Below are positions 9,784 to 55,564 of a stretch of 64,000 nucleotides of DNA, piece after piece (position 1 is the first letter of the stretch; each line of letters begins with the position of its first letter). The notes under the pieces are model-generated. The model was not told the DNA's origin and made no database searches. It saw only the letters and a program-made list of their open reading frames with translations. The position numbers and the translations under genes were made by a program. This DNA is from Anthoceros angustus (lineage: Eukaryota; Plantae; Anthocerotophyta). The stretch lies in assembly GCA_010909165.1 (NCBI GenBank), contig MU008171.1, positions 1-64,000 of the forward strand, in the 5' to 3' direction.

Positions 9784-12373
9784 ATGATGGCTATAGTATG
9801 GCAATCGGACCCGTTGGGGATGCAACAAATTGGTGGAGCTGAAGCTCACCTCGTTACTGTAGGTTGTCAACCGCTGGGAAACAACCAAGCCTTCAGGTGC
9901 AGAAGTGTTAGGAGTCCAGCACTTGCACTTGCGAGGAAATATGTGGATGGGGACGGAATTCGCAGCGATGGTCATCGGCAGGAGCAGGAGCACTTGTGGC
10001 AACAATTTTTTCTGGACCCTACCATGTGGCGGGACAACAGACGAGATAAGAAGAGCTCCCGTTCGCCTGACTTTCGGCATAAGGGGTCCGGCGAGGTACT
10101 GTGGTTAGGAAGCATGGTCAAGCCAGCCTGGGTTGATGAGCACCTCGTTTCTTTGGACTTGCAGATGGGTCATGGTGCCTCTCCTTCCACATCCATCTCT
10201 CCAGGTAAGCCTGAACCTGGCATAAGTGAAGGATCGGGAATGGGCGTGGTGACGGCTGAAACCGTGAGCATGTTATGTCAGCAGGGGAAGCTATCTGAGG
10301 CCGTTGGGGCCCTGGAATCTCTGGCGCAGACAGGCTCTTCCATTTCTCTGGCTGTGTTTTACACTGTGCTGAAACTGTGTTCAGCTCAGAAGGATTTGGT
10401 TGTGGGGCGACGAGTTCATGATCTCGCTGTCAAACTTGGGTACCATGAGAATGCATTCTTGGGAAACCATATCTTGCGCATGTATGCATGTGGAGGTAGG
10501 TTAGAGGAGGCCATGGATGTGTTCACCAGGGTGCGCAAACCAGATGCCTTTATGTGGTTTTCCTTGATCTCCGCATACACTAAACATGGGAAGCCTCAAG
10601 CGGCCATACAACTGTACCATGAGATGCGTAGATCAGGAGTGAAGGCGAATGGTCATGTCTTTGTAGCTGCCCTTCAAGCTTGTGCATTTGCCGCCGACTT
10701 GGAATCTGGCAGAAAAGTGCACTGTGATGTGTTGCACAGTGGCATTCCTCCTGACTTGTTTGTTGGCACCTGCCTGGTGGACATGTATGCAAAATGTGGT
10801 GAACTGAAAGATGCACGCCAGGTTTTTGACAGCATGGCCACAAAGGATGTGGTGACATGGACGACCCTGATTGCTGGGTATGCACAGCAAGGGCTCAGCC
10901 AAGAGGCACTTGTTGTGTATGGACAAATGGAGCAGGAGGGCCTGATTTTGGCTAACCATGTTACTTTGCTTGCCTTCTGAAGGCCTGTGCAAGCACTGGT
11001 GCCTTACAGAAGGGCAGGCAGCTGCACTCACAGATTGTCGGAAGAGGACTGCTGGATCAAGTAGTGCTTGGAAACTGCCTGGTGGACATGTATGCAAAAT
11101 GTGGTGAACTGGAAGATGCACGCCAGGTATTTGAAAGCTTGCCCACAAAGGATGTGGTGACATGGACGGCGCTGATTGCTGGGTATGCTCAGCAAGAACT
11201 CGGCCACGAAGCGCTTGTTGTGTATGGACAAATGGAGGAGGAGGGCCTCATTTTGGCTGATGATTTTACATTTTCATGCCTTCTGAAGGCATGTGCAAGC
11301 ACTGGTGCCTTACAGAAGGGCAGACACCTGCACTCACAGATAGTGGAAAGAGGACTGCTGGATAACGTAGTGTTGGGCAACTGTCTGGTGGACATGTATG
11401 CAAAATGTGGTGAACTTGAAGATGCACGCCGGGTTTTTGACAGTCTGACCATAAAGAATGTGGTGACATGGAATGCCCTGATATCTGGGTATGGTACTTG
11501 TGATGATGGTCACAGAGCACTAGCTTGTTTTGAGGAGATGCTAGCTGCAGGGATTCAGCCTGATGGTGTTACTTTTACTTGCCTTCTAGTAGCATGCAGT
11601 CATGAGGGACTGGTCCACGAGGGTCGCAAGCACTTTGATTCCATGGCTGACCAGTATGGCATCCAACCTACAATTGAGCACTACAATTGCATGATTGATC
11701 TTCTTGGGCGTGCAGGCCATTTAGATGAGGCAGGGAAGGTGCTATTATCATGTCAGAGCCAAAATAACGTTGTGGGCTTGACGTCCCTGTTGAATGCCTG
11801 CAAAAATTATGGGGATATAGAGAGGGCGATTCGGTGTTTTGAAAGCATTGTTAGGGTGGACCCTCAAAGAGCGTCTGCATATGTGCTCATGGCCAATGCC
11901 TACGCAGATGCAGGTATGTGGGCAGATGTAGACAGGATTGAAACTCAGAGAATCGTAGCAGGAGCTAACAAGAAGCCTGCTGTGGCGAGCATTGAGGTGA
12001 GTAAGCAGGTACATAGTTTCCTGGTGGGAGAAAGGAGAGAGGATATTGCGCTTAAGGTGGAGAGCACGAATGCACGTCTGAAGCTGGAAGGAGGCCACGT
12101 ACCTCACACAAAGTTGGTGTTGAAGCCATTGGCTGAGAAGGAAAAGGAAAACATGCTTTGCGGGCATGCTGAGAAGCTAGCTCTAGCGTTTGGTCTCTTG
12201 AACACTCCAGTGGGACACCTCTGGTGGTAACAAAGAATCTACGCATGTGCAGTGACTGCCACAGTTCCACGGAGATCATGTCAAGGCTTGAACAGAGAGA
12301 CATTGTTGTAAGGGATGGGTACCGTGTGCATCGATTTGCAGCTGGTTGTTGCAGTTGTAAGGGTCGACCGTGA
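9784..12373 (+). CDS. PLS-class PPR protein with N-terminal PDF motif and DYW:KP (GRP) domain, paralog 1. Two single-base frameshifts (pseudogene or sequencing error).
   Basis: The ORFs 9679-10980 and 11064-12230 plus the terminal ...GCCSCKGRP* (stop 12371-12373) align colinearly with the intact paralog at 25305. 14 PPR motifs, E1/E2, KPAVASIE, HAEKLA. Frameshifts at ~10965 and ~12210. Confidence 0.85.
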
Positions 12374-12639
12374 GAATGAAGAAGAACTAGCTGGTGCTCT
12401 ATCGTGTACTGCTTTCCTCTTCTGAGCTTCTGAGGGGAAATATGGTTGCATTGCTCCATCAGCTCCATCCATGTTCTAACTGAGACAGCTGAGACGGATT
12501 TACCCCTCTTTTCATGTCAGAGAACGTGTGAATTCTGTGAATCTCCTCCTGTACATAAGTACTGTGAGGGAACTAAGTCAGGCCCTGATTGCAGGGGAGA
12601 CTGCAGCCATCACTACTTGCAACCCCTGAAGGCCTGCCG

Positions 12640-13231
12640 GGGGAAGGAAGGGAGAGGGAAGGTGCAGCGTCTGCAGAAGTCGGCCGTGCAAAGGGGCTTG
12701 GGTAGCCCGTCCCTGTACAGAAACTGAGAGAAAGCTATGTGACGAAGACCATGCTCAGGTTATGGAGGCTGTGGAACTTGTGACGCTGCAGATCCTTTCA
12801 TTTCCGAATCCCTCTTCTGCACTGTCCTGAAGAACTGTGCGGTCAGCAACGATCTTGTGGTGGGTAGCCGCGTCTTTCCTCTTACACCGAGACAGGGGTG
12901 CGGATCAGGCACGAGCCTGTGCAACCACATCTTGCCGATGGACGCTTCTCATGGCAGGTTGCAACACATGATGCATGTGTGTGAGTGAAGCTGCTTCCCC
13001 TGCTGCAGAAATCCGGCAGCAGCACATGCCTGAAGAAGGCAAACAAAGGGGATGCCCTCTGATTGCATACTCGCATACATGGCATGGGCTTCTGTACGTC
13101 CGAGCCTCTGCTGAGCATATCCATCAATCAGGGGGGCAGTCCATGTCACCCATCCTCACCAATATCAGCACCTTGCAAGCCTCATTCAAGCCTCCACACA
13201 TTGGCGTCCATGTTCACCAGGCGATTCATGA
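12640..13231. pseudogene. Rearranged PPR fragments: a plus-strand L-motif piece joined to a minus-strand S-P-L piece
   Basis: Plus strand ESLFCTVLKNCAVSNDLVVGSRV resembles the first L motif of the PPR genes. Minus strand TWTAPLIDGYAQQRLG...FVCLLQACAAAGFLQQGKQLHS. Confidence 0.75.
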
Positions 13232-14715
13232 CAAAATTACCCGCCCAAGGGCTCAACGATGCTTGGAACATCTCCAAAGCCAGATATGCCTTCCTTGTTT
13301 TAGGTTTGTGAAATGTTCAAACTTCGCTCTTCACACGTTGAACTTGGTGTTCAAGTGTGTTCCAACATTGTTCCTCACACATTGAAACCGGTGCGGAATG
13401 TGTTGGAAAAGTGTTGAAATTGCGCTCCGAACCAACTGGCAAACGGTAGTCGTTGGTGTCAGTGCTCTTATGAAGTTTGCAGACCCGTCACCTCAGCAGG
13501 GTAGGGGCGGCTCGGCTTCCATCATCATTGCTGAAAATCCTCTCAAACAAGCTTTCCTCCACCAGAAACAGCAGCACCGGCTGGTGGTGATGACTACCTC
13601 TGCGATGTCCTCGAAAGCATCCAGGCTGGGCCGGCAATGGATGCCCTCCATGCACACCATCCTCAACTACAACCCTAATTTCTTGCCGCCCCAAACTACA
13701 ACTTAAGCAAGGTATGCATGGCGACCCTTCCGTCACCAAGCACAGCGCTCCTGCCCTCCACCAGCCGTGGTGGTTGGGCGATCCTCAGCGCGGGGCGGCC
13801 TGTCGTCGACAAGCCGGTGCATCGACAGGCTGTCGATGCACCGGCTTCCTCATACTTCAAACGTAAGGGTGATTTCTGATTTCACCTTCGACCGCCGGTG
13901 TAGACGTGGCCATCGGGTATAGGACAGAAAGTTGATTTTAATTTTACATCCACAGCCCGTCGCATAAACGTGGATCATGCCCGGCATCAATGTGGCAGTG
14001 GCAAGGCATGTTTGGACCTAACCTACCCGGAGGTTGGTGAAGCTTTGACAACGCTAACATCATACATTTGGTACGAGTGAAAAGGTGTCATGGCGGTTGA
14101 AATATTACCTGCAACGCAGGTAATGCAATCTCTTTATTTAATTAAGTATAACATATGGTACGTGAAAATGCAAGTGTGTCCAGCGGGCAAGGCGAGCCAG
14201 ATATCCTAAAACATATTAAAGTGGGGATGCAGGTGTTTAAAGTGGGGATGCAGGTGTGTCCAGCAGCAAGCGAGGCGAGATATCCATCGACATGATGGAC
14301 CCGTAGAAGCCACAACTTCCCCACTTTACAGCTATCGAAGGACGTATCAGATGTAGTTTTGATCGACGTCCATGTTGTGGGTTGTATGGTTTAAACTTCC
14401 CCACTTTACAGCTATCGAAGGACGTATTCGATATAGTTTTGATCGACCGTCCATGTTGTGGGTTCTAAGGTTTAAACCTCCAATGTCCACAAAACTATTG
14501 TTGTCTGTCGTGCTGTGTCCACTAATCTCTGCACTTGGGTTGAGTGTTTGTTTAATATTATTGAATCCAATACTTATCTTTAAGTAATTAATTAGTCTTA
14601 ATTACTGTTGTTCTCAAAAGCACGTGAATTGGCATACTCTACAACATTCTATGTTCAAAGAGACATACTTAATCTATTAAGATTGGGTTATTACATGCAC
14701 CCTCGATGAATTTCC

Positions 14716-15222
14716 TCATTTCCGCCTTAAAACACCGAGTATATAGTCTTTAGGACGTTTTGCTATGGTGTATATAGATTTTTCTTGAGTGAACCATTCA
14801 TGCATTTTTATATGTGGGATAGTGATCCGTAAATGTGGATTATGATGTAATAATCCTAATAGTAGATGGATACAATGAGGAGAAAGATTTCCAGTCAGTT
14901 GAAGCGCATACTCGCTAATTGTAAACTCATCATCCTCTTCCACAAAAAGGTGAAAACCAGTTAGCATCTTAAACAAGGTTACCCCAGTGGACCATATATC
15001 ACATGGTGCTCCCTTGTATTTTAATCCCAGACGAACCTCAGGAGCCATGTACGTTATTGTTCCACAATCTTCGCTATATTCAAGATTTGAGTTTCCTGAA
15101 GTTCCAAAATCTGCGATTTTCAAAACTCCTTGCCACTCATAAGTAAATTCTCCGGTTTGATATCGCGGTGAAAATGCCGATTGTGGCAATGTTCTAAACC
15201 ATAAATAAGTTCACGAAAATGG
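14716..15222 (-). pseudogene. CIPK/SnRK-like Ser/Thr kinase, C-terminal half (copy A)
   Basis: HRDIKPENLL, LKIADFG, CGTITYMAPEV, CDIWSTGV, RITIPHIKMHEWF. Confidence 0.85.
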
Positions 15223-15664
15223 TGTTTAAAGTGGGGATGCAGGTGTGTCCAAGGCGGAGGCGAGATATCCATCGACATGATGGACCCGAAGCCACAACTT
15301 CCCACTTTCACTATCGAAGGCGTCGGATGTAGTTTTGATCGGCGTCCATGTTGTGGGTTGTATGGTTTAAACTTCCCACTATCGAAGGCGTATTATAGTT
15401 TTGATCGGCGTCCATGTTGTGGGTTCTAAGGTTTAAACCTCCAATGTCCACAAAACTATTGTCCGTCGTGTCCACTAATCTGCACTTGGGTTGAGTGTTT
15501 GTTTAATATTATTGAATCCAATACTTATCTTTAAGTAATTAATTAGTCTTAATTCGTTGTTCTCAAAAGCACGTGAATTGGCATACTCTACAACATTCTA
15601 TGTTCAAAGAGACATACTTAATCTATTAAGATTGGGTTATTACATGCACCCTCGATGAATTTCC

Positions 15665-16471
15665 TCATTTCCGCCTTAAAACACCGAGTATATAGTCTTT
15701 AGGACGTTTTGCTATGGTGTATATAGATTTTCTTGAGTGAACCATTCATGCATTTTTATATGTGGGATAGTGATCCGTAAATGTGGATTATGATGTAATA
15801 ATCCTAATAGTAGATGGATACAATGAGGAGAAAGATTTCCGATCGGTTGAAGCGCATACTAATTGTAAACTCATCATCCTCTTCCACAAAGGTGAAAAGT
15901 TAGCATCTTAAAACAGGTTACCCTGGACCATATATCACATGGTGCTCCTTGTATTTTAATCGACGAACCTCGGGAGCCATGTCGTTATTGTTCCACAATC
16001 TTCGCTATATTCAAGATTTGAGTTTTCCTGCGGCAAGTTCCAAAATCTGCGATTTTCAAAACTCCTTGCCACTCATAAGTAAATTCTCGGTTTGATATCG
16101 CGGTGAAAATGCCGACATTGTGGCAATGTTCTAAACCATAAATAAGTTCACGAAAATGGTGTATTAAATCTTCACATATGCAACCGCTTCGTTGAATAAG
16201 ATGCACAATGAATCATGTCCCACCGTTCTTGAACTATAAATACATTTTACCCAACTTATGCATAGTATGTGCCTTCACTATGTTTGGGTGATCCAAAACT
16301 TTTAAAGAAAAAATTCAAGCTCTATGGCTTTCATACATGTTTCACCAACGTTATTAAAGATCTTGATGGCCTTTGGTTCATCGGAGTAATGTTTTTCCAA
16401 GCATAACTTGTGCTTGACCACCTTCCCCAATACGGTTTCACGATCTCATAATCGCCAAGTCTTGTAACCAT
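15665..16471 (-). pseudogene. CIPK/SnRK-like kinase, frameshifted (copy B)
   Basis: Reconstructed across frames: LGDYEI...AIKIF...KVLDHPNIVK...HHFRELIYGLEHCHN...KIADFG...HEWF. Confidence 0.8.
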
Positions 16472-17455
16472 GCCATGTCGCACCGCAAGCATCATAGTTG
16501 CTGCCGACGCAAGAACTTGACTTGAAAGAAAAAATCAAAATTGGAAGCCCGGAGCTCCTTCCTCCTAGAGGTGCAGCTATATAATCAAGATGGGCCTACA
16601 CCACTATGCAGAGACTCAATGTCGCATCACGAATAGCAAAATACGGTTCTACCACCGACAAAGGCACGCTTAATACTTCCAACTTGCAAGGGACGAGCCA
16701 ATGTGGATGAGTATCGTTGTCTTCAGTCGTTGGAAGCTCCCAAGACAAACATCAACAATATTGTTGAACTGGTTGGCGTGATAGTGATGTAATTAACTTG
16801 ATATGATTGTTGAGCCATGGAAATATTACATGTATATATAGAAGTTGGTGTCCTTGGTTCTAAGTAAATATTCTATCACACTCACTTGGATTAAAGAGGA
16901 GAACCTAATGTCCTTGGTTCTCGGCAAATATTCTATCACACTTACTTGAACGAAGAGGGAGAGCCCCGATGATCTTTGGTTCTCGACAAAGTTACTTGAA
17001 CGAAGAGGAGAACTGGTGTCCTTGGTTCTCGATGAAGTCACACTTACTTGAACCAAAGAGGAGAACCTGACAGTGTCCCTGCCTCGTGCTCACTTAGTTA
17101 GTTAGGCACGGCTTGGATCGTCATAGCAACCCGGCTTGGATCGCCTATATAACTTGAACAACAAGGTGGAGGAGAAGTGAGCGATGAGCGGATAGCCTCA
17201 TGGACGAGCGAGAACGTGAACGGACGGGCGATCTGACAGTGCATAGGTGCATGTAAGTCGTGACGACTCTACCACTCTTGTGTCCGTGAGAGTTCTGGAT
17301 GAAAGTCGCCCCACGGCGGTGAAGAAAGGCCAACCCATTTTGTAAATGTTGCTATGAAAGCACGTGAATTGGCATACTCTACAACATTCTATGTTCAAAG
17401 AGACATACTTAATCTATTAAGATTGGGTTATTACATGCACCCTCGATGAATTTCC

Positions 17456-18271
17456 TCATTTCCGTCTTAAAAACACCGGTATATAGTCTTTAGGACGTTT
17501 TGCTATGGTGTATATAGATTTTCTTGAGTGAACCATTCATGCATTTTTATATGTGGGATAGTGATCCGTAAATGTGGATTATGATGTAATAATCCTAATA
17601 GTAGATGGATACAATGAGGAGAAAGTTTTCCGGTTGAAGCGCATACTCGCTAATCAGAAACTCATCATCCTCTTCCACAAAAAGGTGAAAACCGTTAGCA
17701 TCTTAAACAAGGTTACCCATGGACCATATATCACATGGTGCTCCTTGTATTTTAATCCTGCAGAACCTCGGGAGCCATGTAATGCGTTATTGTTCCACAA
17801 TCTTCGCTATATTCAAGATTTGAGTTTCCAAGAAGTTCCAAAATCTGCGATTTTCAAAACTCCTTGCCACTCATAAGTAAATTCTCCGGTTTGATATCGC
17901 GGTGAAAAATGCCAGCATTGTGGCAATGTTCTAAACCATAAATAAGTTCACGAAAATGGTGTACAGCTAAATCTTCACATATGCAACCGCTTCGTTGAAT
18001 AAGATGCAATAATGAATCATGTCCCTTCTTGAACTATAAATACATTTTACCCAACTTATGCATAGTATGTGCCTTCACTATGTTTGGGTGATCCAAAACT
18101 TTTAAAGAAAAAATTCAAGCTCTATGGCTTTCATACATGTTTCACCAACGTTATTAAAGATCTTGATGGCCTTTGGTTCATCGGAGTAATGTTTTTCCAA
18201 GCATAACTTGTGCTTGACCACCTTCCCCAATACGGTTCATCGATCTCATAATCGCCAAGTCTTGTAACCAT
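17456..18271 (-). pseudogene. CIPK/SnRK-like kinase, frameshifted (copy C)
   Basis: Near-identical to copy B. Confidence 0.8.
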
Positions 18272-19229
18272 GCCATGTCGCCGCAAGCATCATAGTTGTC
18301 GGCCTTGACTTGAAAGAAAAATCAAAATTGGAAGCCCGGAGCTCCTTCCTCCTAGAGGTGCAGCTATATAATCAAGATGGGCCTACACCACTATGCAGAG
18401 ACTCAATGTCGTACCGTGCGAAGCAAAATACGGTTCTACCACGGCGGTGGGCACGCTTAATACTTCCAACTTACAGGGACGAGCCAATGTGGATGAGTAT
18501 CGTTGTCTTCATATCGTTGGAAGCTCCCAAGACAAACATCAACAATATTGTTGAACGGTTGGCGTGATAGTGATAATGTAATTAACTTGATATGATTGTT
18601 GAGCCATGGAAATATTACATGTATATATAGAAGTTGGTGTCCTTGGTTCTCGACGAAGTAAATATTCTATCACACTCACTTGGATTAAAGAGGAGAACCT
18701 AATGTCCTTGGTTCTCGGAGTAAATATTCTATCACACTTACTTGAGCGAGGAGAGCGGTATCTTTGGTTCGACAAAGTTACTTGAGCGAAAGAGGAGAAC
18801 ACGGTGTCCTTGGTTCTCGATGAAGTCACCTTACTTGAACCAAAGAGGAGAACGTGTCCTCGGTTCTCGTGCTCACTTAGTTAGTTAGGCACGGGCTTGG
18901 ATCGGCTAGCAGGCTTGGATCGCCCTATATAACTTGAACAACAAGGTGGAGGAGAAGTGGCGATGAGCGGATAGCGTGTGGCGAAACGTGAGTGAGGGAG
19001 CGATCGGCCTGAGGCGAGCATAGGTGCATGTAAGCGTGACGACTCTACCACTCTTGTGTCCAGAGTTCGCGGATGAAAGTCGCCCCACGGCGGTGAAGAA
19101 AGGCCAACCCATTTTGTAAATGTTGCTATGAAAGCACGTGAATTGGCATACTCTACAACATTCTATGTTCAAAGAGACATACTTAATCTATTAAGATTGG
19201 GTTATTACATGCACCCTCGATGAATTTCC

Positions 19230-20048
19230 TCATTTCCGTCTTAAAAACACCGGTATATAGTCTTTAGGACGTTTTGCTATGGTGTATATAGATTTTCTTG
19301 AGTGAACCATTCATGCATTTTTATATGTGGGATAGTGATCCGTAAATGTGGATTATGATGTAATAATCCTAATAGTAGATGGATACAATGAGGAGAAAGT
19401 TTTCCGGTTGAAGCGCATACTCGCTAATCAGAAACTCATCATCCTCTTCCACAAAAGGTGAAAACCGGTTAGCATCTTAAACAAGGTTACCCATGGACCA
19501 TATATCACATGGTGCTCCTTGTATTTTAATCCTGCAGAACCTCGGGAGCCATGTACGTTATTGTTCCACAATCTTCGCTATATTCAAGATTTGAGTTTCC
19601 TCGAAGTTCCAAAATCTGCGATTTTCAAAACTCCTTGCCACTCATAAGTAAATTCTCCGGTTTGATATCGCGGTGAAAAATGCCAGCATTGTGGCAATGT
19701 TCTAAACCATAAATAAGTTCACGAAAATGGTGTACAGCTAAATCTTCACATATGCAACCGCTTCGTTGAATAAGATGCAATAATGAATCATGTCCCACCA
19801 GGTTCTTGAACTATAAATACATTTTACCCAACTTATGCATAGTATGTGCCTTCACTATGTTTGGGTGATCCAAAACTTTTAAAGAAAAAATTCAAGCTCT
19901 ATGGCTTTCATACATGTTTCACCAACGTTATTAAAGATCTTGATGGCCACCGTTCATCGGAAGTAATGTTTTTCAAGCATAACTTGTGCTTGACCACCTT
20001 CCCCAATACGGTTTCACCGATCTCATAATCGCCAAGTCTTGTAACCAT
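19230..20048 (-). pseudogene. CIPK/SnRK-like kinase, frameshifted (copy D)
   Basis: ORF 19908-20162 gives MVTRLGDYEIGETVLGKVVKHKLCLKNITSDE. The remainder matches the other copies. Confidence 0.8.
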
Positions 20049-21046
20049 GCCATGTCGCATCGCAAGCATCATAGTTGCTGCCGACGCAAGAACTTGACTT
20101 GAAAGAAAAATCAAAATTGGAAGCACGGAGCTCCTTCCTCCTAGAGGTGCATATATAATCAAGATGGGCCTACACCACTATGCAGTAGACTCAATGTCGC
20201 ATCACCGCGAATAGCAAAATACGGTTCTACCACGGCGGTGGGCACGCTTAATACTTCCAACTTGCAAGGGACGAGCCAATGTGGATGAGTATCGTTGTCT
20301 CTTGATCGTTGAAGCTCCCAAGACAAACATCAACAATATTGTTGAACTGGTTGGCGTGATAGTGATGTAATTAACTTGATATGATTGTTGAGCCATGGAA
20401 ATATTACATGTATATATAGAAGTTGGTGTCCTTGGTTCATCTAAGTAAATATTCTATCACACTCACTTGGATTAAAGAGGAGAACCTAATTTGTCCTTGG
20501 TTCTCGACGGCAAATATTCTATCACACTTACTTGAGCGAAGAGGGAGAGCTGACGTATCTTTGGTTCTCGACAAAGTTACTTGAACGAAAGAGGAGAACT
20601 CGGTGTCCTTGGTTCTCGATGAAGTCACACTTACTTGAACCAAAGAGGAGAAACTGACAGGTCCCTGCCTCGTGCTCACTTAGTTAGTTAGGCACGGCTT
20701 GGATCGTCATAGCAACCCGGCTTGGATCGCCTATAACTTGAACAACAAGGTGGAGGAGAAGTGAGCGATGAGCGGATAGCCTTGCGTGACGAGCGAGAAC
20801 GTGAACGGACGGAACGCGATCAAGACAGGCGAGCATAGGTGCATGGTCGACGACTCTACCACTCTTGTGTCCAGAGAGTTCTGAGATGAAAGTCGCCCCA
20901 CGACGGCGGTCAAGAAAGGCCAACCCATTTTGTAAATGTTGCTATGAAAAGCACGTGAATTGGCATACTCTACAACATTCTATGTTCAAAGAGACATACT
21001 TAATCTATTAAGATTGGGTTATTACATGCACCCTCGATGAATTTCC

Positions 21047-21848
21047 TCATTTCCGTCTTAAAAACACCGAGTATATAGTCTTTAGGACGTTTTGCTATGG
21101 TGTATATAGATTTTTCTTGAGTGAACCATTCATGCATTTTATATGTGGGATAGTGATCCGTAAATGTGGATTATGATGTAATAATCCTAATAGTAGATGG
21201 ATACAATGAGGAGAAAGTTTTCCACCAAGCATCGCTAATCAGAACTCATCATCCTCTTCCACAAAAGGTGAAAACCATTAGCATCTTAAACAAGGTTACC
21301 CCGGACCATATATCACATGGTGCTCCTTGTATTTTAATCCCGACGAACCTCGGAGCCATGTACGTTATTGTTCCACAATCTTCGCTATATTCAGATTTGA
21401 GTTTCCTTTGCAAGTTCCAAAATCTGATTTTCAAAACTCCTTGCCACTCATAAGTAAATTCTCCGGTTTGATATCGCGGTGAAAATGCCGATTGTGGCAA
21501 TGTTCTAAACCATAAATAAGTTCACGAAAATGGTGTACTAAATCTTCACATATGCAACCGCTTCGTTGAATAAGATGCAATAATGAATCATGTCCCACCA
21601 GTTCTTGAACTATAAATACATTTTACCCAACTTATGCATAGTATGTGCCTTCACTATGTTTGGGTGATCCAAAACTTTTAAAGAAAAAATTCAAGCTCTA
21701 TGGCTTTCATACATGTTTCACCAACGTTATTAAAGATCTTGATGGCCACCGTTCATCGGAAGTAATGTTTTTCCAAGCATAACTTGTGCTTGACCACCTT
21801 CCCCAATACGGTTTCACCGATCTCATAATCGCCAAGTCTTGTAACCAT
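21047..21848 (-). pseudogene. CIPK/SnRK-like kinase, frameshifted (copy E)
   Basis: CGTITYMAP and APCDIWSGVTLFKML occur in ORF 21249-21500. Confidence 0.8.
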
Positions 21849-22833
21849 GCCATGTCGCATCGCAAGCATCATAGTTGCCGCCGACGCAAGAACTTGACTT
21901 GAAAGAAAAATCAAAATTGGAAGCTGAGCTCCTTCCTCCTAGAGGTGCGACTATATAATCAAGATGGGCCTACACCACTATGCGAGACTCAATGTCGCAT
22001 CACGAATAGCAAAATACGGTTCTACCACGGCGGTGGGCACGCTTAATACTTCCAACTTGCAAGGGACGAGCCAATGTGGATGAGTATCGTTGTCTTCGTA
22101 TCGTTGGAAGCTCCCAAGACAAACATCAACAATATTGTTGAACTGGTTGGCGTGATAGTGATGTAATTAACTTGATATGATTGTTGAGCCATGGAAATAT
22201 TACATGTATATATAGAAGTTGGTGTCCTTGGTTCTCAAGTAAATATTCTATCACACTCACTTGGATTAAAGAGGAGAACCTAACGTTGTCCTTGGTTCTC
22301 GGCAAATATTCTATCACACTTACTTGAACGAAAGAGGAGAGCCCGTGATCTTTGGTTCTCGACAAAGTTACTTGAACGAAAGAGGAGAACCCCGATGTTG
22401 TCCTTGGTTCTCGATGAAGTCACACTTACTTGAACCAAAGAGGAGAAACGATGTGTCCCTGCCTCGTGCTCACTTAGTTAGTTAGGCACGGGCTTGGATC
22501 GTAGCAACGGCTTGGATCGCCTATATAACTTGAACAACAAGGTGGAGGAGAAGTGAGCGATGAGCGGATAGCCTTGCGTGACGGCGAGAACGTGAACGGA
22601 CGAAGCGATCAAAGACAGTGCATAGGTGCATGTAAGCGTGACGACTCTACCACTCTTGTGTCCGTAGAGTTCTGCGGATGAAAGTCGCCCCACGACGGCA
22701 AGAAAGGCCAACCCATTTTGTAAATGTTGCTATGAAAAGCACGTGAATTGGCATACTTACAACATTCTATGTTCAAAGAGACATACTTAATCTATTAAGA
22801 TTGGGTTATTACATGCACCCTCGATGAATTTCC

Positions 22834-23659
22834 TCATTTCCGCCTTTAAAAACACCGAGTATATAGTCTTTAGGACGTTTTGCTATGGTGTATATAGATT
22901 TTTCTTGAGTGAACCATTCATGCATTTTTATATGTGGATAGTGATCCGTAAATGTGGATTATGATGTAATAATCCTAATAGTAGATGGATACAATGAGGA
23001 GAAAGTTTTCCGCCGTTGAAGCGCATACCGCTTAACCGTAAACTCATCATCCTCTTCCACAAAAGGTGAAAACCATTAGCATCTTAAACAAGGTTACCCA
23101 ATGGACCATATATCACATGGTGCTCCTTGTATTTTAATCCCAGACGAACCTCGGGAGCCATGTAATGCGTTATTGTTCCACAATCTTCGCTATATTCAGA
23201 TTTGAGTTTTGCAAAGAAGTTCCAAAATCTGCGATTTTCAAAACTCCTTGCCACTCATAAGTAAATTCTACGGTTTGATATCGCGGTGAAAAATGCCAGA
23301 TTGTGGCAATGTTCTAAACCATAAATAAGTTCACGAAAATGGTGTATGTAAATCTTCACATATGCAACCGCTTGTTGAATAAGATGCAATAATGAATCAT
23401 GTCCCACCGTTCTTGAACTATAAATACATTTTACCCAACTTATGCATAGTATGTGCCTTCACTATGTTTGGGTGATCCAAAACTTTTAAAGAAAAAATTC
23501 AAGCTCTATGGCTTTCATACATGTTTCACCAACGTTATTAAAGATCTTGATGGCCACTTTGGTTCATCGGAAGTAATGTTTTTCCAAGCATAACTTGTGC
23601 TTGACCACCTTCCCCAATACGGTTTCACCGATCTCATAATCGCCAAGTCTTGTAACCAT
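22834..23659 (-). pseudogene. CIPK/SnRK-like kinase, frameshifted (copy F)
   Basis: Near-identical nucleotide copy of B-E. Confidence 0.8.
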
Positions 23660-24414
23660 GCCATGTCGCACTGCAAGCATCATAGTTGCCGACGCAAGAA
23701 CTTGACTTGAAAGAAAAATCAAAATTGAAGCCTGGAGCTCCTTCCTCCTAGAGGTGCGACTATATAATCAAGATGGGCCTACACCACTATGCAGAGACTC
23801 AATGTCGCATCACAATAGCAAAATACGGTTCTACCACCGGCGGTGGGCACGCTTAATACTTCCAACTTGCAAGGGGAGCCAATGTGGATGAGTATCGTTG
23901 TCTTCGTATCGTTGGAAGCTCCCAAGACAAACATCAACAATATTGTTGAACTGGTTGGCGTGATAGTGATGTAATTAACTTGATATGATTGTTGAGCCAT
24001 GGAAATATTACATGTATATATAGAAGTTGGTGTCCTTGGTTCTCGACGAAGTAAATTCTATCACACTCACTTGGATTAAAGAGGAGAACCTAACAGTGTC
24101 CTTGGTTCTCGACGAAGTAAATATTCTATCACACTTACTTGAACGAAAGAGGAGAGCCTGACAGTATCTTTGGTTCTCGACAAAGTTACTTGAACGAAAG
24201 AGGGAGAACCTGACAGTGTCCTTGGTTCTCGATGAAGTCACACTTACTTGAACCAAAGAGGGAGAAACCTGACAGGGTCCTCGGTTTTCGTGCTCACTTA
24301 GTTAGTTAGGCACGGGCTTGGATCGCTGTTAGCCACGGGCTTGGGTCGCCCTATATATCTTGAACGACAAGGTGGAGGAGAAGTGAGCGATGAGCGGATA
24401 GCCTTGCGTGACGA

Positions 24415-25040
24415 GTGATGCTGCAGACCCTTTCTTTGCCGAATCCCTCTTCTGCACTGTCCTGAAGAACTGTGCGGTCAGCAACGATCTTGTGGTGGGT
24501 GGCCGCGTCTTTCCTCTTACAGTGAGACAGGTGTGTGAATCAGACACGAGCCTGTGCAACCATATCTTGCCGATGGACGCTTCTCATGGCAAGTTGCAAC
24601 ACATGATGCATGTGTGTGAGTGAAGCTGCTTCCCCTGCTGCAGAAATCCGACAGCAGCACATGCCTGAAGAAGGCAAACAAAGGGGATGCCCTCTGATTG
24701 CATACTCGCATACAGAGCCTGGGCTTCTATACGTCCGAGCCTTTGCTGAGTATATCCATCAATCAGGGGGGCAGTCCATGTGACCCATCCTCACCAACAT
24801 CGAGCACCTTGCAAGCCTCATTCAAGCCTCCACACTTTGGCGTCCATGTTCACCAGGCGATTCATGAGAAGGATATCCGCGTTATCCGCACTAGCCTTAA
24901 TACTTAGATCTTCTTCCTTGTCTATGACTGTGTGTTCTGTGCAGAGGCATACGCTTTGAGGACTGCACGCATACATGTTACCTTGCTTCACACCCCATGC
25001 TCTCAAAGTCACTGTGAAGGATGAAGCCGGGGGCTGCCAC
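24415..25040. pseudogene. Second copy of the rearranged PPR fragment block
   Basis: 24415-24867 duplicates 12780-13231. Plus strand ESLFCTVLKNCAVSNDLVVGGRV. Minus strand ILLMNRLVNMDAKVWRLE is a decayed S motif. Confidence 0.8.
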
Positions 25041-25304
25041 AAAGACTTTGATGGGCTTCTCCCAGGCTGACTTACGGTAGATGGTTTCAGGCCGCTTTCG
25101 CTTTTTTTTCAGGCTTTGTACTTTATTCAGTATAGAGTCACACAACAGAAAGCCTCTGACATGTATTTATGTATTTGGCAACCATGTTGGACTCTCTTCG
25201 TGTCTTTCGCCATGGGTAATGAAACAACTTATACACTACCCTTGAGGGCAGGGTGGTGATGCCAATCACCAGGGCATCCTCCCATAGAAAGCAGTCCTTA
25301 CACG

Positions 25305-28292
25305 ATGGCCACAGTCTGGAAAGCGGACCCGTTGTGGACCCAACAGATTGGTGGAGCTCCTGCTCACCTCGTATCCATAGGGAGTCAACCGCTAGGAAAC
25401 AACCAAGCCTCCAAGTGCAGGCGTGTAAGGAGCCCAGCACTACCGCTTCCGATAAAATTTGTGGGTGGGGACGGAATTTGCAGCGATGGTCCTCGCCAGG
25501 AGCAGGATCACTTGTGGCAACAACTTTTTCTGGACCCTACTATGTGGTGGGACAACAGACGAGATAAGAAGAGCTCCCGTTCGCCTGATTTCCGGCATAA
25601 GGGGTCCGGCGAGGTCCTGTGGTTAAGCAGCATGCTCAAGCCACCTTGGGTTGATGAGCAGCTCAGCTCTTTGGATATGCAGATGGGTCATGGTGCCTCT
25701 CCTTCCAAGTCGAGCTCTCCGGATGAGCCTGAACCTGGCAGGCCTGCAGGATCGGAAATGGGCGTCGTAACGGCTGTAACCGTGAGCACATTATGTCAGC
25801 GGGGGAAGCTGACTGAGGCAGTTGGAGCCCTGGAATCTCTGGCGCAGGCAGACTCTGGTATTTCTCAGTCTCTGTTTTACACTGTGCTAAAACTGTGTGC
25901 AGCCAAGAAGGATCTAGTTTTGGGGCGACGAGTTCATGACCTTATTGTCAAACTTGGGCACGAGTCGGATGCATTCTTGGGGAACCATATCTTGCGCTTG
26001 TATGCATGTGAAGGTAGGTTGCAGGAGGCCTTGGATGTGTTCACCAGGGTAGGAAAACCAAATGCCTTCATGTGGTTTTCCTTAATCTCTGCACATGCCA
26101 AGCATGGGAAACCTACTGAGGCCATACAACTGTACCATGACATGCGTAGGTCAGGAGTGAAGGCGGATGCTCACGTCTTCGTTGCTGCCCTTCAAGCTTG
26201 TGCATTTGCCGCCGACTTGGAATCTGGCAGAGAGGTGCACTTTGATGTGTTACGAAGTGGGATTCCTCCCAACTTGTTTGTTGGAAACTGCCTGGTGGAC
26301 ATGTATGCAAAATGTGGCGAACTGGAAGATGCACGCCGGGCGTTTGACAGCTTGACCACAAAGGATGTGGTGACATGGACGGCCCTGATTGGTGGGTATG
26401 CACAGCAAGGGCTTGGCCAAGAGGCGCTTGTACTGTATGGACACATGGAGCAAGACGGCCTCATTTTGGCTGACCGTGTTACTTTTGCTTGCCTTTTGAA
26501 GGCCTGTGCAAGCACTGGTGACTTACAGAAAGGCAGGCAGCTGCACTCACGTATCGTGGAAAGAGGACTGCTCCATGACATGCTGGTGGGCAACTGCCTG
26601 GTGGACATGTATGCAAAATGTGGGGAACTCAAAGATGCGCGCCAGGTTTTTGACAGCTTGGGCAGAAAGGATGTCGTGACATGGACGTCCCTGCTTGCTG
26701 GGTATGCAGAGGAAGGGCTCGGCCGAGAGGCACTTGTTCTGTATGAACAAATGGAGCAAGAGGGTCTGATTTTGGCTAACGATGTTACTTTTGCTTGCCT
26801 TCTCAAGGCATGTGCAAGCACTGGTTCCTTACAGAGGGGCAGGCAGCTGCACTCACAGATTGTGGAAAGGGGACTGGTAGATAACATAATGGTTGGCACC
26901 TGCCTGGTGGACATGTATGCAAAATGTGGAGAACTGGACGCTGCACGTGGTGTTTTTGACAGCTTGGCCACCAAAAATGTGGTGTCATGGACGGCCCTTA
27001 TAGGTGGGTATGCAAAATGTGGCCAACTGGATGGTGCACGACAGGTTTTTGACAGGTTGGCTACAAAAAGTGTGGTAACATGGAATGCCCTGATTGCTGG
27101 GTATACAGATCAAGGGCTGGGTCAAGAGGCGCTTCTTCTGTATGGACAAATGGAGCAGGAGGGCCTGATTGTGGCTAACGATGTTACTTTTGCTTGCCTT
27201 CTGAAGGCCTGTGCAAGCACTGGTGCCTTACAGAGAGGCAGGCAGCTGCACTCACAGATTGTCGAAAGGGGACTGTTGGATACCATACTTGTTGGCACCT
27301 GCCTGGTGGACATGTATGCAAAATGTGGCGATCTGGGAATGGCACGCCGGGTGTTTGACAGCTTGGCCACAAAGGATGTGGTGACATGGACGACCCTGAT
27401 ATCTGGGTATGGTGCTTGTGATGAAGGGCACAAGGCACTGGCTTGTTTTGAGGAGATGTTAATTGCTGGTATCCAGCCTAATGATGCTACTTTTACTTGC
27501 CTTTTAGTAGCATGCAGTCATGGAGGACTGGTGGATGAGGGTCGTAAGCACTTTGGGTCCATGGCTGAAGAGCATGGCATCAAACCTACGACTGAGCACT
27601 ACAACTGCATGATTGATCTTCTTGGGCGTGCAGGCCATTTAGATGACGCTGAGAACATGCTACTGTCATGTGAGGGCCAAAGTAATGTCGTGGGATTGAC
27701 ATCTTTGCTGAATTCCTGCAAAAGTCACGGGGATATTGAAAGGGCGACACGATGTTTTGAGAGCCTGATTAGTCTGGAGCCTCAAAGTGCATCCGCATAT
27801 GTGCTCATGGCCAATGCCTATGCAGATGTAGGTAGGTGGACCGACGTAGGGAGGATTGAAAAGCAGAGAATGTCAGCAAGAGCTAATAAGAAACCTGCAG
27901 TGGCAGGTATTGAGGTCAAGGATCAGGTACATACATTTGTAGTGGGAGATAGAAGAGAAGACATTGCGCTCAAGGTAGAGAGCACGAATGCACGTCTGAA
28001 GGAGGAAGGAGGCCACGTACCCCACACAAAGTTGGTGTTGAAGCCACTGGGTGAGAAGGAAAAGGAAGATGCGCTTTGCGGGCATGCCGAGAAGCTAGCT
28101 CTGGCGTTTGGTCTCTTGAATACGCCCAGTGGCACAGCTCTGGTGGTAACCAAGAATCTGCGCATGTGCAGTGACTGCCACAGTTCCACGGCGATCATGT
28201 CTAGGATTGAAAGGAGAGAAATTGTTGTGAGGGATGGGTACCGTGTGCATCGATTTGCAGATGGTTGTTGCAGTTGCAAGGGTCGCCCGTGA
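25305..28292 (+). CDS. PLS-class PPR protein with N-terminal PDF motif and DYW:KP (GRP) deaminase domain, paralog 2. Intact, 995 aa, intronless. Candidate organellar U-to-C RNA editing factor.
   Basis: 18 P/L/S motifs (including one SS and P2-L2-S2), E1, E2, KKPAVAGIEV, CGHAEKLALAFGL, CSDCH, C-terminal GCCSCKGRP*. N-terminal WQQLFLDPTMWWDNRRDKKSSRSPDFRHKGSGEVLWL. Confidence 0.95.
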   Translation: MATVWKADPLWTQQIGGAPAHLVSIGSQPLGNNQASKCRRVRSPALPLPIKFVGGDGICSDGPRQEQDHLWQQLFLDPTMWWDNRRDKKSSRSPDFRHKGSGEVLWLSSMLKPPWVDEQLSSLDMQMGHGASPSKSSSPDEPEPGRPAGSEMGVVTAVTVSTLCQRGKLTEAVGALESLAQADSGISQSLFYTVLKLCAAKKDLVLGRRVHDLIVKLGHESDAFLGNHILRLYACEGRLQEALDVFTRVGKPNAFMWFSLISAHAKHGKPTEAIQLYHDMRRSGVKADAHVFVAALQACAFAADLESGREVHFDVLRSGIPPNLFVGNCLVDMYAKCGELEDARRAFDSLTTKDVVTWTALIGGYAQQGLGQEALVLYGHMEQDGLILADRVTFACLLKACASTGDLQKGRQLHSRIVERGLLHDMLVGNCLVDMYAKCGELKDARQVFDSLGRKDVVTWTSLLAGYAEEGLGREALVLYEQMEQEGLILANDVTFACLLKACASTGSLQRGRQLHSQIVERGLVDNIMVGTCLVDMYAKCGELDAARGVFDSLATKNVVSWTALIGGYAKCGQLDGARQVFDRLATKSVVTWNALIAGYTDQGLGQEALLLYGQMEQEGLIVANDVTFACLLKACASTGALQRGRQLHSQIVERGLLDTILVGTCLVDMYAKCGDLGMARRVFDSLATKDVVTWTTLISGYGACDEGHKALACFEEMLIAGIQPNDATFTCLLVACSHGGLVDEGRKHFGSMAEEHGIKPTTEHYNCMIDLLGRAGHLDDAENMLLSCEGQSNVVGLTSLLNSCKSHGDIERATRCFESLISLEPQSASAYVLMANAYADVGRWTDVGRIEKQRMSARANKKPAVAGIEVKDQVHTFVVGDRREDIALKVESTNARLKEEGGHVPHTKLVLKPLGEKEKEDALCGHAEKLALAFGLLNTPSGTALVVTKNLRMCSDCHSSTAIMSRIERREIVVRDGYRVHRFADGCCSCKGRP

Positions 28293-28641
28293 GATGGAAC
28301 GAGAACGGCTTTTTTCTGTTGAGGAGTGCATGTTCTGCTCAGGTCCATGGCTGTTGAATCCAATGAATCTCCTCCTGTACATAAGTGCTACAGATGTCCC
28401 CGTCTCATGAATCATAGGCACAAGAAGACTGAACAAGGTCTGTAACGAGTTTGGAGGAATGGAGACGTCTAGACCTAGTACCAGTTGCCTGCCGAAAGGC
28501 CCATCAATGCCATTTCCTTCTTATTCCCTGCACCATTCATGCATCGATCTGGGCGGACCTCCGAGAGGATGTACATCAGGTTGTGGTCTACCCGGCTCTT
28601 TTCTGAAAAGCCCAGGGACCGTGAGAAAAAAGCAAGCCTGG

Positions 28642-28797
28642 GTACCGAGGTAGCTCAACCGGGCTCCCCAACCGGGCTGGCTGATCAGTTCACCATCTCG
28701 TGAGGTCAGCATGGTTGGATGTACTGAGGTAGCTCAACCGGGCTTTCCAACCAGGCTGGCTGATCAGTTCACCATCTCGTGAGGTGAGCATGGTTGG
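28642..28797. repeat. Two-copy ~79-bp direct repeat
   Basis: GTAC(C/T)GAGGTAGCTCAACCGGGCT...CATGGTTGG occurs twice. A 31-bp doublet follows at ~28900-28955. Confidence 0.8.
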
Positions 28798-30555
28798 CAA
28801 ACCTGGTTGTGCTGGGAGGAGGCACTTCCATCGATCTATGCTACTACTGAATTTTGTATTACTGAATTTCATACAAAATTCGCACCTTCAATTCGGCTAG
28901 TTTGCTTCAGTTCCAGGCTAGGTCAATTTTGCTTCAGTTCCAGGCTAGGTCAATTTCGAAGTGAGCTCGAACTAGCACACGGACATAATCCATTGTGGCA
29001 ATGAGTTTGCTGACAATCTGTTGACGTAGCAAGTAGTTATTGGGTGCCAATTAGATTTCTCCCAGCTCAGACCCCAAACTATACTCCTATGGATTATTGA
29101 CAATCGGGACGAACAAAAATGAAAAAAATAATGTATGCTATACAATTTATATGAATCATGGGGCGTTCACTTCAGTTCAATTCGAAATTGAAGTGTCCAC
29201 TTGGCGCACAGTTTGATGAATTGAACTACTCAATTGAACGGACATCAGTTTGAGGAAATTGGCACTCCGTAAGGGTCCAAAGATAAAGCATTCAACTCTG
29301 TTACATCTTCCTAATTGGGAGTATTTGTATATATGTACATATCAAAATATTCAAGAGTTATATGCAACGTATCATGGATAACAAGTGCTCATACCACAAA
29401 CCTAAAAGGAGACAGGAGATAAAGCTATTGTGACAATACAACTATGTTTGATACAAATGTCGCACAACACTGTGAATACATTAAAATTGCATTTTGTCTT
29501 AGAGAAGCATATTACCAAACAGCACATAGTCATTGCATCCAAACAGCTAGGTAAAGAAGTATTTATGATTATTATACGTAAAACCATTTGAACTTCAAAT
29601 ATTTCTTACATTTTATTTTTTTAATTTTAGATATATTGGGAACATATGAGAGTAGCTCCCATAGGTTCTCAATTAGGCAGGTAGACTTGCTATGCATACT
29701 ACGAAGACCAAGAGGAAGATTTTCAGATTAGATATAATAAAAAATATTTAAGAATATTGCTCTTCAGCGGGCGCTCTCAACGGCGATTCTCCATAAGGCG
29801 GCGACAGTGGGTGATGCCTTTTCCTCTTCCTCTGTGGTTTGCAGGCCGTTTATTCTACACATATGACATTGTGTGCATTGGTCACTTTAGGTAGGGCTGT
29901 TGCTCTCTTCACTCCGACCCCCGGGTCCCCATTTGTTGTCCCTTCCTAGATGGTCTCTTTCCATCGTTCTTTCACCTCAATAAATCATCTCATCTCTTTA
30001 AGAATGAATGATTTATTAATTCTGATCCTTGTCTATAGGCTGGTCTTCAAACACAAGAGCATTGAGAGTCCACAACTACCTGCTCCCCCATGATTATGCC
30101 TCCTACTATAGGACCATATATATGTTGCAGAATAATATCTACTATAAATAGGATATATTAACCTTATAATGGTTAAGTATTATAAAATATAGGAAGTACT
30201 AACCATATATAGGACAATTAGCTATATAACAGGGAAGTATTATAAAATATAGGAAACACTAAGCATAAATAGGAGCGTTTGCACGGAGACGAAGACGCCC
30301 AGTGACCGAGGGGATTGACAGGCACGGAAGCGCGGAGGACAGGAGCCTGAGGCATTTGCAAACATATCGGGTTCATTGAGGGGCTAGGGTTTGTAGAGAG
30401 AAGGGATACCGGGTAACCGGCAACTCCATGTGTCGTAGGTGCCATCGTGGCACCTAAAGGGTGGGAGCGACCCGCGTGTATGCTGCCAAAGGCCTACATG
30501 ACCTGCCGACGTTCCGAATTGGAGGCTTAAACCCAGAACCCGCGCCTCGCTCGCG

Positions 30556-53025: not shown

Positions 53026-53580
53026 AAGCATGTATATGTATGTCCATTGTATCTACTCCTTCAAACGAGTCCGCTACTTTCTCCCAGCCATTGGAGGGCA
53101 AGGCATATCCAAAGGGCAGAGCACCCATCTCGTTGCGCCAGTTCCTCGCACTGTTGCACGACCTCATGCAGAACCTCGCAGATTCGCATCGCTTGGAACT
53201 ATGCGGCTTTGCTCTACAAATCCAATGGATCAAAGATCTGCTACTTCTTGTTTGCACTTTGTCGGATCTCAGAGGGAATCGTTTACTGTTGTAGCTACCT
53301 CGATGCCATTTACAGCGGAATGGAGATACGTTCGTTTGCGAGCTCCTCGACACACTCTCCACAAAGCACACAGCAACTCTTCTTTGCAGCAAGGGCCACA
53401 CAACTGGCTGGGTGGGCCACCAGCCTCGGTCAAGTCTGTGAGCTTTGGCCATGGGTATTTTGCCCAACTCCATCTGCAGGGCCAGTGGAGGTGGCTGCTG
53501 TGGTTCCAAGCTTCCAGCAGGAACGTAGCCGTGTAGATCCTCCCTTAGCTCGTGGGAGGGGGTTGGGGAAGGCAGCTGGT

Positions 53581-55564
53581 ATGGCAGATTTATATGGATG
53601 GAGCCTTGGCGTGTTGGGTCTCCCTTTGTGGAGCATTCTCCTAGCTGTGGGAGTGGTTGCCCTTTTTGCTGTGAAGCGGAATGGAAGGAAGAGCAGCAAT
53701 CTCCCGCCTGGTCCACTTCCGCTTCCGGTTGTGGGAAATCTGCACTTGTTTGCAACCTCCAGACCATTGCACAGGGAACTTGCCAAGCTGGCTGCCAAGT
53801 ACGGCGAAATAGTGTGGGTAAAGTTGGGCTCCAAGGGAGCGATAGTGGTCTCCTCACCAGCCATGGCTCGAGAGATTCTCAAGAACCAGGATGCCGTGTT
53901 TGCTTTTCGATCCAAGACCTTTGCCATCGCCCAGCTAACTTTCGATGACATATCCTTTGCACCGTATGGTCCAGCGCTGCTCCAATCCAAGTAAGTTTTG
54001 TGGGTTTAATCGGAGTATCGTACTGCCCAATGCCCATCATGTATGCAGCCCGGCCGGACGGTGCCAATGCTGACACCACCGTACTCTGATAGGAAGGTGA
54101 TGGCGTCAGAGCTGATGTCTGGTAAGAGGCTAAAACAATTCGAGGGAGTACGGTCACAGGAAATTGCTGCCGTGGTTGCCACAATCCGAAGTCACGTTAC
54201 CAAGTCCGGGTCTGGGGCGGGCAGGCCATCACCTGTGAACGTCACTCTCCTGCTCAACCTTCTGAATTTGAACTCCATAACTCGTATGGGCATAAGCAAG
54301 AAATTCTTTGACTACGATATACAAGAAGATACCGAAAAGCAAAGCACCTCAGATGCAAACAAGGTAGTCGGATTCGACTTGCTTTCACGATCGGTCTGGT
54401 GTACTAACAGGGTCTCTCGGTTTTGTCTCTCTTACGCTTGTTGGGACTTCGAATGAGCAGGATATTTGGGATGCACAGACTTTCCTCAGCCTCATGAAAG
54501 AGCTCATATCAGTGATTGCAACCCAGCTGTTCCGGGATTGTATCCCCTATCTGTCCATTTTCGACAACTTGAATCCTGTCAAGTACAGAATTCAGCGGAT
54601 CCGCAAGCGGATGGGCCAATTCTTAACAGCTGTGATCGAGGAACACCGCAACGAGTTAAGAAAAGACTCGGGCCGACGTGCAGAAGACTATCTTGACGCC
54701 TTATTGCAGTTGAATGAAGAAGGGCAGCTATCCAACGATTCTGTGAAGGGACAGGTCATTGTAAGCCCCCAACTGAGAGCTACGGTGACCTGTGTGGTCG
54801 AATGTAGGAAAAGTTCATGTTAGCTGGGTTAGCAACACTGACGCTCGATTTGAAGGACATGATTTTGGCAGGGACCGACACAACAGCCTCTACTACGGAA
54901 TTTGCGATGGCTGAGTTATTGCGACATCCTGCAACTTTGGAGGGAGCAGCAAAGGAGGTGAATTCTGTGGTGAGCAGCGATCGGCAGGTTACCGAAGCAG
55001 ATCTTCCGAAACTGCCGTATCTTGGAGCCATAGTGAAAGAGACGCTCAGGTTACATCCAGTTGTGCCTTTGTTAGTTCCTCATTGCTCTGTGGAGGACAC
55101 CAAGGTAGCAGGCTACGACATTCCTGCCCAAACAATCGTGTTTGTCAATGCATGGGCCATAAGTACAGACCCTGCTGTGTGGAAGGATCCCCTCCAATTC
55201 ATTCCGGAAAGGTTTATCGACAGGTGCCCATCATTTCCTTAGTTTCAAGTTTCATTCGTGCCCTGCCATAGCTCACATCACGGTGACTCCAGGGATTGCT
55301 GTACGACTGTGCAGGCCAGACGTGGATATTCGGGGCCAGAGCTTTGAGGTCCTACCTTTTGGTTCTGGAAGAAGAGGTTGCGCAGGCACGAACTTAGGTT
55401 TATCAATGGCGCACCTCACTCTTGCGACTCTGCTGCACAACTTTCTGTGGTCTCTTCCCGAAAACGTAAAGCAACCTCAAGACCTGGACATGACCGAGAG
55501 GAAGGGACTCGGCATGAGCAGGGTTGAACCCTTACAAGTTGTGTTCTCGCTTAGACATGGTTGA
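53581..55564 (+). CDS. Cytochrome P450, CYP71 clan (A-type), 5 exons
   Basis: Hydrophobic anchor plus LPPGPLPLPVVGNLHL, I-helix [18 protein letters not shown], and heme motif FGSGRRGCAG. Inferred introns start at ~53991, 54364, 54761 and 55224. Confidence 0.92.

Follow-up and report, generated by a model that had tools for sequence, protein, structure and literature searches.

Editing factors, OSB proteins and the locus studied

Pentatricopeptide repeat (PPR) editing factors of plant organelles are usually described as a targeting peptide followed by a PPR tract and C-terminal E/DYW domains, and the tract reads its RNA in the 5' to 3' direction, beginning with the N-terminal motifs. The OSB proteins (for Organellar Single-stranded DNA-Binding) are built differently, with a central SSB-like OB fold and then one to several C-terminal copies of the PDF domain, which has until now been taken as characteristic of OSBs. 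The present work concerns a gene at 25305-28292 (+) in a stretch of 64,000 nucleotides of the hornwort Anthoceros angustus (assembly GCA_010909165.1, contig MU008171.1, positions 1 to 64,000 of the forward strand), hereafter called the window, that unites a PDF domain with a PPR editing factor in one predicted polypeptide.

Combinations of a PPR tract with a second nucleic-acid-related module are known from maize PPR4, which has an N-terminal RRM, from PPR-SMR proteins and from PRORP. These differ from the protein of the window in their other domains and their P-class tracts, and they act in splicing, RNA stabilisation and tRNA 5' processing; none of them is known to have a PDF. No description of a PDF linked to PPR proteins was found in the literature, in line with the first-pass annotation of this DNA, which knew of none, and an earlier mention may exist in Gutmann 2020 (Mol Plant) or Gerke 2020 (New Phytol). 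A 2026 survey of the OSB family does not mention PPR proteins (PMC13393729). For the combination of PDF, PLS-type PPR array and DYW:KP domain in one chain, no describing paper was found either.

Organization of the gene

The region 25305-28292 (+) is a single intact open reading frame (ORF) of 995 codons plus stop. An in-frame stop at 25257-25259, 45 nt 5' of the ATG at 25305, makes this ATG the earliest possible start within the exon. Pfam searches with the 995 residues recovered PPR (6e-91), E_motif at aa 808-870 and DYW_deaminase at aa 903-993 (7e-33). By its sequence, this intact nuclear gene encodes an organelle RNA-editing factor of the PLS-E-DYW:KP class and of hornwort type (GRP subgroup), the order being putative presequence, PDF, linker, PLS array, E1/E2 and DYW:KP(GRP).

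The N-terminal region was modelled over 200 residues on the basis of nine PDF-PPR N-termini. Residues 1-59 (25305-25481) have a predicted local distance difference test score (pLDDT) below 50 and a basic composition, the first 55 residues holding 6 K/R and 1 D/E for a net charge of +5. This composition and the modelled disorder fit an organellar targeting presequence, which the segment probably is. It is followed by a folded PDF domain at aa 60-130 (25482-25694; pLDDT 85-94), delimited from sequence, AlphaFold2 model and Foldseek, whose core motif of 52 residues is encoded at 25509-25664; the translation there is exactly the one that the first-pass annotation had quoted as an OSB-type PDF upstream of the first PPR motif. 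Residues 131-153 (25695-25763) form a Ser/Pro-rich linker that is modelled as disordered (pLDDT below 50 at aa 131-152), and helices begin at about aa 157 with the first PPR motif. As read from sequence and model, a single OSB-type PDF domain is thereby placed between putative presequence and first PPR motif, with a flexible linker of about 23 residues behind it.

The remainder of the protein is made of 19 PPR motifs at aa 154-794 (25764-27686), found with Pfam and bounded by hand from the repeat pattern, of E1 and E2 motifs at aa 795-861 (27687-27887; Pfam E_motif and manual assignment) and of a DYW:KP domain at aa 862-995 (27888-28289; Pfam and alignment to solved DYW domains) that ends in GRP. 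Assigned by hand, the array runs through four P1-L1-S1 triplets, one SS motif, a fifth P1-L1-S1 triplet and P2-L2-S2. The earlier claim that a single polypeptide joins a PDF, a PLS array and a deaminase-fold domain of the DYW:KP (GRP) type stands with the intact frame of 995 codons.

Relationship of the N-terminal domain to OSB proteins

When aa 55-135 were used as a phmmer query, 674 of 1.84 billion cluster representatives matched at E<=1e-3, of which 227 reached E<=1e-10 and 20 reached E<=1e-30. The strongest were proteins with several PDF repeats, and one of the strong matches (P0001) combines a weak SSB/OB match with five PDFs behind it. Some of the matches bear OSB names, such as a Populus nigra 'protein OSB1, mitochondrial-like' (1e-26) and a Euphorbia peplus 'organellar single-stranded DNA binding protein 3' (7e-24). 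In an alignment of 103 PDF segments, all six invariant columns are present in the window protein (D23, R25, K28, D35, F36 and P53, counted within aa 61-129), and so are the W, P, N, K and L residues of the nearly invariant columns. The positions conserved in PPR-linked and OSB PDFs alike are LW, P, WWDNR, K, PDF.HK, LWL and P.WV.

Scans of aa 1-152 with Pfam and NCBIfam gave no match, nor did a sequence search of the PDB with the same residues. In these two libraries the named OSB proteins match only SSB, that is their OB part, and weakly, so that neither library appears to contain a PDF model; this is probably why the PDF-PPR fusion stays unannotated. Word-indexed protein searches gave one OSB-like match for region 60-125 in a 300-aa frame and none for region 60-125 or region 1-200 in a full-length frame. 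Such blanks reflect the word prefilter and the length window rather than absence, because HMMER run over all representatives gave the 674 matches.

The AlphaFold2 model of aa 61-129 is confident (mean pLDDT 91.8) and describes a small domain of helix, short strands and helix. When it was searched with Foldseek against the Swiss-Prot part of the AlphaFold database, only OSB1, OSB3, OSB2 and OSB4 of Arabidopsis were found, each with probability 1.00, and everything else had E>2. The best match, OSB1, superposed with a TM score of 0.87, a root-mean-square deviation (rmsd) of 1.3 Å and 42% identity. Over the predicted OSB structures together, the values were 38-46% identity, TM 0.70-0.87 and rmsd 0.7-1.3 Å, in a comparison that sets prediction against prediction on both sides. 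Matches among the AlphaFold database clusters were likewise OSB-like proteins only. The helix-strand-helix order had suggested a double-stranded RNA-binding domain or another solved nucleic-acid-binding fold. This candidate was rejected, since every hit of the model in a Foldseek search of the PDB had E>=4 and the best Z score from VIA-align wide, 4.1, lies under the tool's stated noise level. The predicted fold thus matches that of the OSB PDF, and no solved structure in these searches shares it. Both the profile search and the comparison with OSB1-4 bear out the resemblance that had been noticed from the letters; on sequence and model together, the N-terminal domain of the window protein is homologous to OSB PDF domains.

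The PDF is common to the window protein and the OSBs. Nevertheless, the former has a single PDF on its N-terminal side with a PPR-E-DYW body behind, and Pfam found no SSB/OB match within its 995 residues, where named OSBs give weak SSB hits. With the OB fold absent, the protein shares a domain with OSBs and is not itself an OSB.

The PDF was also encountered in further settings, namely in a Coptis chinensis kinesin-motor protein with three PDFs and in a Kingdonia uniflora protein of 1160 aa with 13 PDF stretches (P0035 and P0002).

The C-terminal domain

The C-terminal domain of 134 residues was aligned to the solved DYW:PG domains 9kfx, 7w86 and 7o4e. In place of the PG box it has KP, the domain start K-PAVAGIEV aligning to PGCSWIEV. 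The zinc ligands are kept, with HAE (versus HSE) and with CSDCH as an intact CxxCH. The lysine at position 88 of the domain, counted from the KP pair, is the K of TKNLR and corresponds to Lys88 of KP6, the active-site lysine. The protein ends in CKGRP, with a C-terminal GRP and not DYW. By the published definitions of DYW:KP and of the GRP subgroup (PMC11845758, PMC9478123), the domain belongs to DYW:KP, GRP subgroup, and U-to-C activity is predicted for it. The window protein resembles hornwort GRP-subgroup members (Gerke 2020 and Gutmann 2020, cited in PMC9478123) in its PLS array, P2-L2-S2, E1/E2, KP for PG, HxE, CxxCH, Lys88 and terminal GRP.

The GRP subgroup is one of two variants in hornworts, and in E. 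coli the designer GRP-type proteins KP2 and KP3 converted U to C with an efficiency of about 22-26% (PMC9478123). These were built from PLS and C-terminal motifs in a design described without a PDF, and they carry an N-terminal thioredoxin/His tag (PMC9478123). The descriptions of the subgroup that were consulted cover the PPR motifs and the C-terminal domains, and an N-terminal PDF is not mentioned in them. Since PDF-less designer GRP editors are active, the PDF would be an accessory lying outside the catalytic core.

PDF-PLS proteins in other land plants

PDF and PPR occur together in eight of the 150 best representatives among the phmmer matches. A translated Logan contig (P0146 on L001, 753 aa) is intact and has the same architecture as the window protein, with PDF, PLS, E and DYW:KP ending in GRP. 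The ferns Adiantum capillus-veneris (P0085), Ceratopteris richardii (P0103) and Pteridium aquilinum (P0117) have PDF and PLS with no DYW as modelled; a second Adiantum capillus-veneris protein (P0065) has two PDFs, and the lycophyte Diphasiastrum complanatum has PDF and PLS (P0125, at locus L002). Two further Logan proteins bear three PDFs in front of the PPR array (P0006) and PDF plus PLS (P0122, at L003). The fern and lycophyte proteins (KAI5076972 and KAI5061374 of Adiantum, KAH7429238 of Ceratopteris, the Pteridium transcript and KAJ7231026 of Diphasiastrum) are annotated as hypothetical or as PPR only.

Presequence, PDF, a linker of about 15-35 residues and the first PPR motif are common to the proteins of Adiantum, Ceratopteris, Pteridium and Diphasiastrum and to two Logan proteins, and an N-terminal alignment showed the same order and similar spacing across the PDF-PPR proteins. 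In a PDF tree of low resolution, eight of the ten PPR-linked PDFs, those of fern and lycophyte proteins and of the window protein grouping together, fell into one weakly supported group (SH-aLRT 85), and PPR-linked PDFs may have a single origin. An artefactual fusion of ORFs was ruled out by the recurrence of the arrangement in P0146, in the fern and lycophyte proteins and in a paralogous copy within the window (copy B, below).

In Diphasiastrum, the region 3900-7400 of L002 (MU835231.1) contains an interrupted PDF-bearing PLS frame, more PPR motifs and then an ORF with E motif and DYW:PG domain, the latter canonical in its PG box, HSE and CSCGDYW. Shortly upstream of the annotated start there is one more PDF, a partial one, and the gene model puts introns inside the PDF. 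In the same way, at L003 the PDF ORF (P0122) is followed by a frame change and by a long PLS-E frame that runs into a PG-box DYW domain. At both interrupted loci, PDF and DYW:PG are, by their sequence, probably continuous on one protein. These loci and the deaminase-less fern proteins differ from the window protein in their C-terminal parts, and together they lead to rejection of any special link between PDF and KP type. As far as the compared sequences tell, the PDF-PLS layout is old and not KP-specific.

Transcript contigs, a paralog and selection on the PDF

Logan contigs of four runs were mapped onto 23300-28900. One of them, run X1, comes from the same organism as the window, as judged from exact matches, and its label as RNA is a guess. 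Its contigs matching the gene exactly lie at 24838-25538, 26645-26801, 27803-27989 and 28231-28704. The first of these, 701 nt long and with no differences, covers the 5' leader (24838-25304, +) and runs on across the ATG into the start of the PDF. Depth in this run is zero at 23300-24234 and fades past 28720. These contigs fit a transcript of about 24.4-28.7 kb in window coordinates, and they argue against translation having to start downstream, without being proof.

Over about 25357-28348, contigs of 90-95% identity pile up by the hundreds or thousands in each of the four runs; the PDF region is included, and single variant positions there are borne by 22-49 contigs per run. Such piles show that many expressed paralogs in three organisms share this N-terminus and form a very large family.

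Copy B, a paralog of the intact gene (copy A), lies at 9787-12387 (+) and has the same PDF N-terminus, with 84-85% nucleotide identity in the DNA comparison. Relative to copy A, its frame is broken by two 1-bp homopolymer deletions (TTTT to TTT near 10965 and CCC to CC near 12206), and about 400 bp of the PLS array are missing. In its PDF, R replaces the second W of WWDNR. Copy B is either a pseudogene or a copy that carries assembly errors.

Between A and B, Nei-Gojobori estimates gave a Ka/Ks of 0.39 for the segment before the PDF, 0.56 for the linker and 0.34 for the first 400 PPR codons. For the PDF, Ka/Ks was 0.32 and Ka was 0.072, the lowest Ka of the four segments, these values coming from 57 codons only and from a partner copy that is frame-broken as assembled. 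The estimate for the PDF agrees with the deep conservation of its sequence in other lineages, which is the much stronger argument.

The two genes are separated by a tandem array at about 14500-24400, with a period of about 1.8 kb and at least 5-6 units. The array is flanked by two direct repeats of 455 bp (12780-13234 and 24415-24870), about 95% identical and 11.6 kb apart, of which the second stops 435 bp short of the intact gene's ATG and has RNA-library contigs lying over it. The arrangement may represent a mobile element's termini or else a segmental duplication.

Possible roles of the PDF domain

The PDF of AtOSB1 was reported to be sufficient for binding single-stranded DNA (ssDNA) (PMC6963530). 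As PPR-linked and OSB PDFs have the same conserved aromatic and basic positions, this biochemical activity is probably kept in the former. The most likely of the readings considered is that of an RNA clamp. The PDF would stay on the mature protein and would bind single-stranded nucleic acid independently of sequence. Given the direction in which the PPR tract reads its target and the linker of about 23 residues, the domain would reach RNA just upstream of the footprint; on its short tether it would sit 5' of the PPR footprint, with some 25 nt or more between it and the edited base downstream. In that position it might add non-specific affinity or keep the target single-stranded while DYW:KP acts at the 3' end. 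That the PDF is such an accessory RNA grip, retained on the mature protein, is considered slightly more probable than its opposite.

Several points weigh against this RNA clamp. OSB1 and OSB2 are reported to prefer ssDNA over double-stranded DNA or RNA (PMC4166229), a preference that suits a DNA tether no less than an RNA clamp. The function of PPR-linked PDFs is inferred from sequence, the presequence and its cleavage are putative, and the Ka/Ks of the PDF has the narrow basis given above. Moreover, no exact contig listed for run X1 joins the PDF to the first PPR motif, in a run whose RNA label is itself guessed.

The same conserved positions, identical in PPR-linked and OSB PDFs, would also serve a tether to the nucleoid or to ssDNA. 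Here the PDF would bind organellar ssDNA in transcription bubbles, R-loops or replication intermediates, the editing factor would be enriched at sites of nascent RNA, and editing would be co-transcriptional. Binding of ssDNA in preference to RNA is the only biochemistry reported for a PDF; however, a lone PDF may bind weakly without the OB or oligomer context of OSBs, and the position of the domain, held by a short linker where the PPR tract meets the 5' side of its RNA, also suits binding to that same RNA. Such a tether is judged unlikely. Rather less weight is given to a protein-protein module, in which the PDF would not bind nucleic acid and would recruit or oligomerise OSBs, other PDF-PLS proteins or DYW donors in trans. 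The fern PDF-PLS proteins without a deaminase of their own speak for it, such proteins being thought to need trans-acting partners (PMC12548569), as does the reported tetramer of AtOSB2 (PMC6963530). Yet aromatic and basic residues that are both conserved and exposed, as here, are what nucleic-acid binders typically have, and a role of the PDF in the oligomerisation of OSBs would be conjectural.

It is quite improbable that the PDF has no role in the mature protein, either because it is removed with the targeting peptide or because it is the remnant, now in decay, of an exon captured long ago. Its position directly behind the presumed presequence and the broken frame of copy B would agree with this, but the model of the fold is a confident one, the hornwort, fern and lycophyte copies retain every invariant residue of the family, and the PDF has a Ka/Ks of 0.32. 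Finally, it can scarcely be credited that the protein acts on DNA by means of a PDF that brings the deaminase-fold domain to ssDNA. The sole argument for it is that a single chain combines an ssDNA-binding motif with a deaminase fold, while in this family the target is chosen by the RNA-reading PPR tract and the PDF is also present on PLS proteins without a deaminase domain.

Implications for editing factors and designer editors

Motif-based surveys ignore the region before the PPR tract. A conserved domain of nucleic-acid-binding type in that region, in hornworts, ferns and lycophytes, would extend the editing machinery of the most heavily editing plant groups by one component, and it widens the known contexts of the PDF. 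In this respect the intact copy of the window, with its transcript support, is a useful reference. So far, it seems, no designer GRP U-to-C editor (about 22-26% editing) has contained the native N-terminal module. A broader proposal, tentative and on the whole doubtful, is that the PDF is an ancestral functional accessory module of the PLS editing factors of seedless land plants, acting as an RNA grip or as a coupling to ssDNA or nucleoid, and that its omission is one reason why designer GRP editors work poorly. If this were true, adding the PDF back would raise their efficiency.

Other features of the window

Two further ORFs were observed. The one at 53047-53994 (+) finishes with a proline-rich hinge, PPGPLPLPVVGNL, and then with residues similar to a cytochrome P450 N-terminus, and it is probably a first P450 exon. 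On the other strand, 62232-62909 (-) holds an ORF of 225 aa in which a unit of about 29 aa (YNALYNN...KTIYNIPIAKG) recurs in tandem; rather than a gene, this is probably a tandem DNA repeat in translation.

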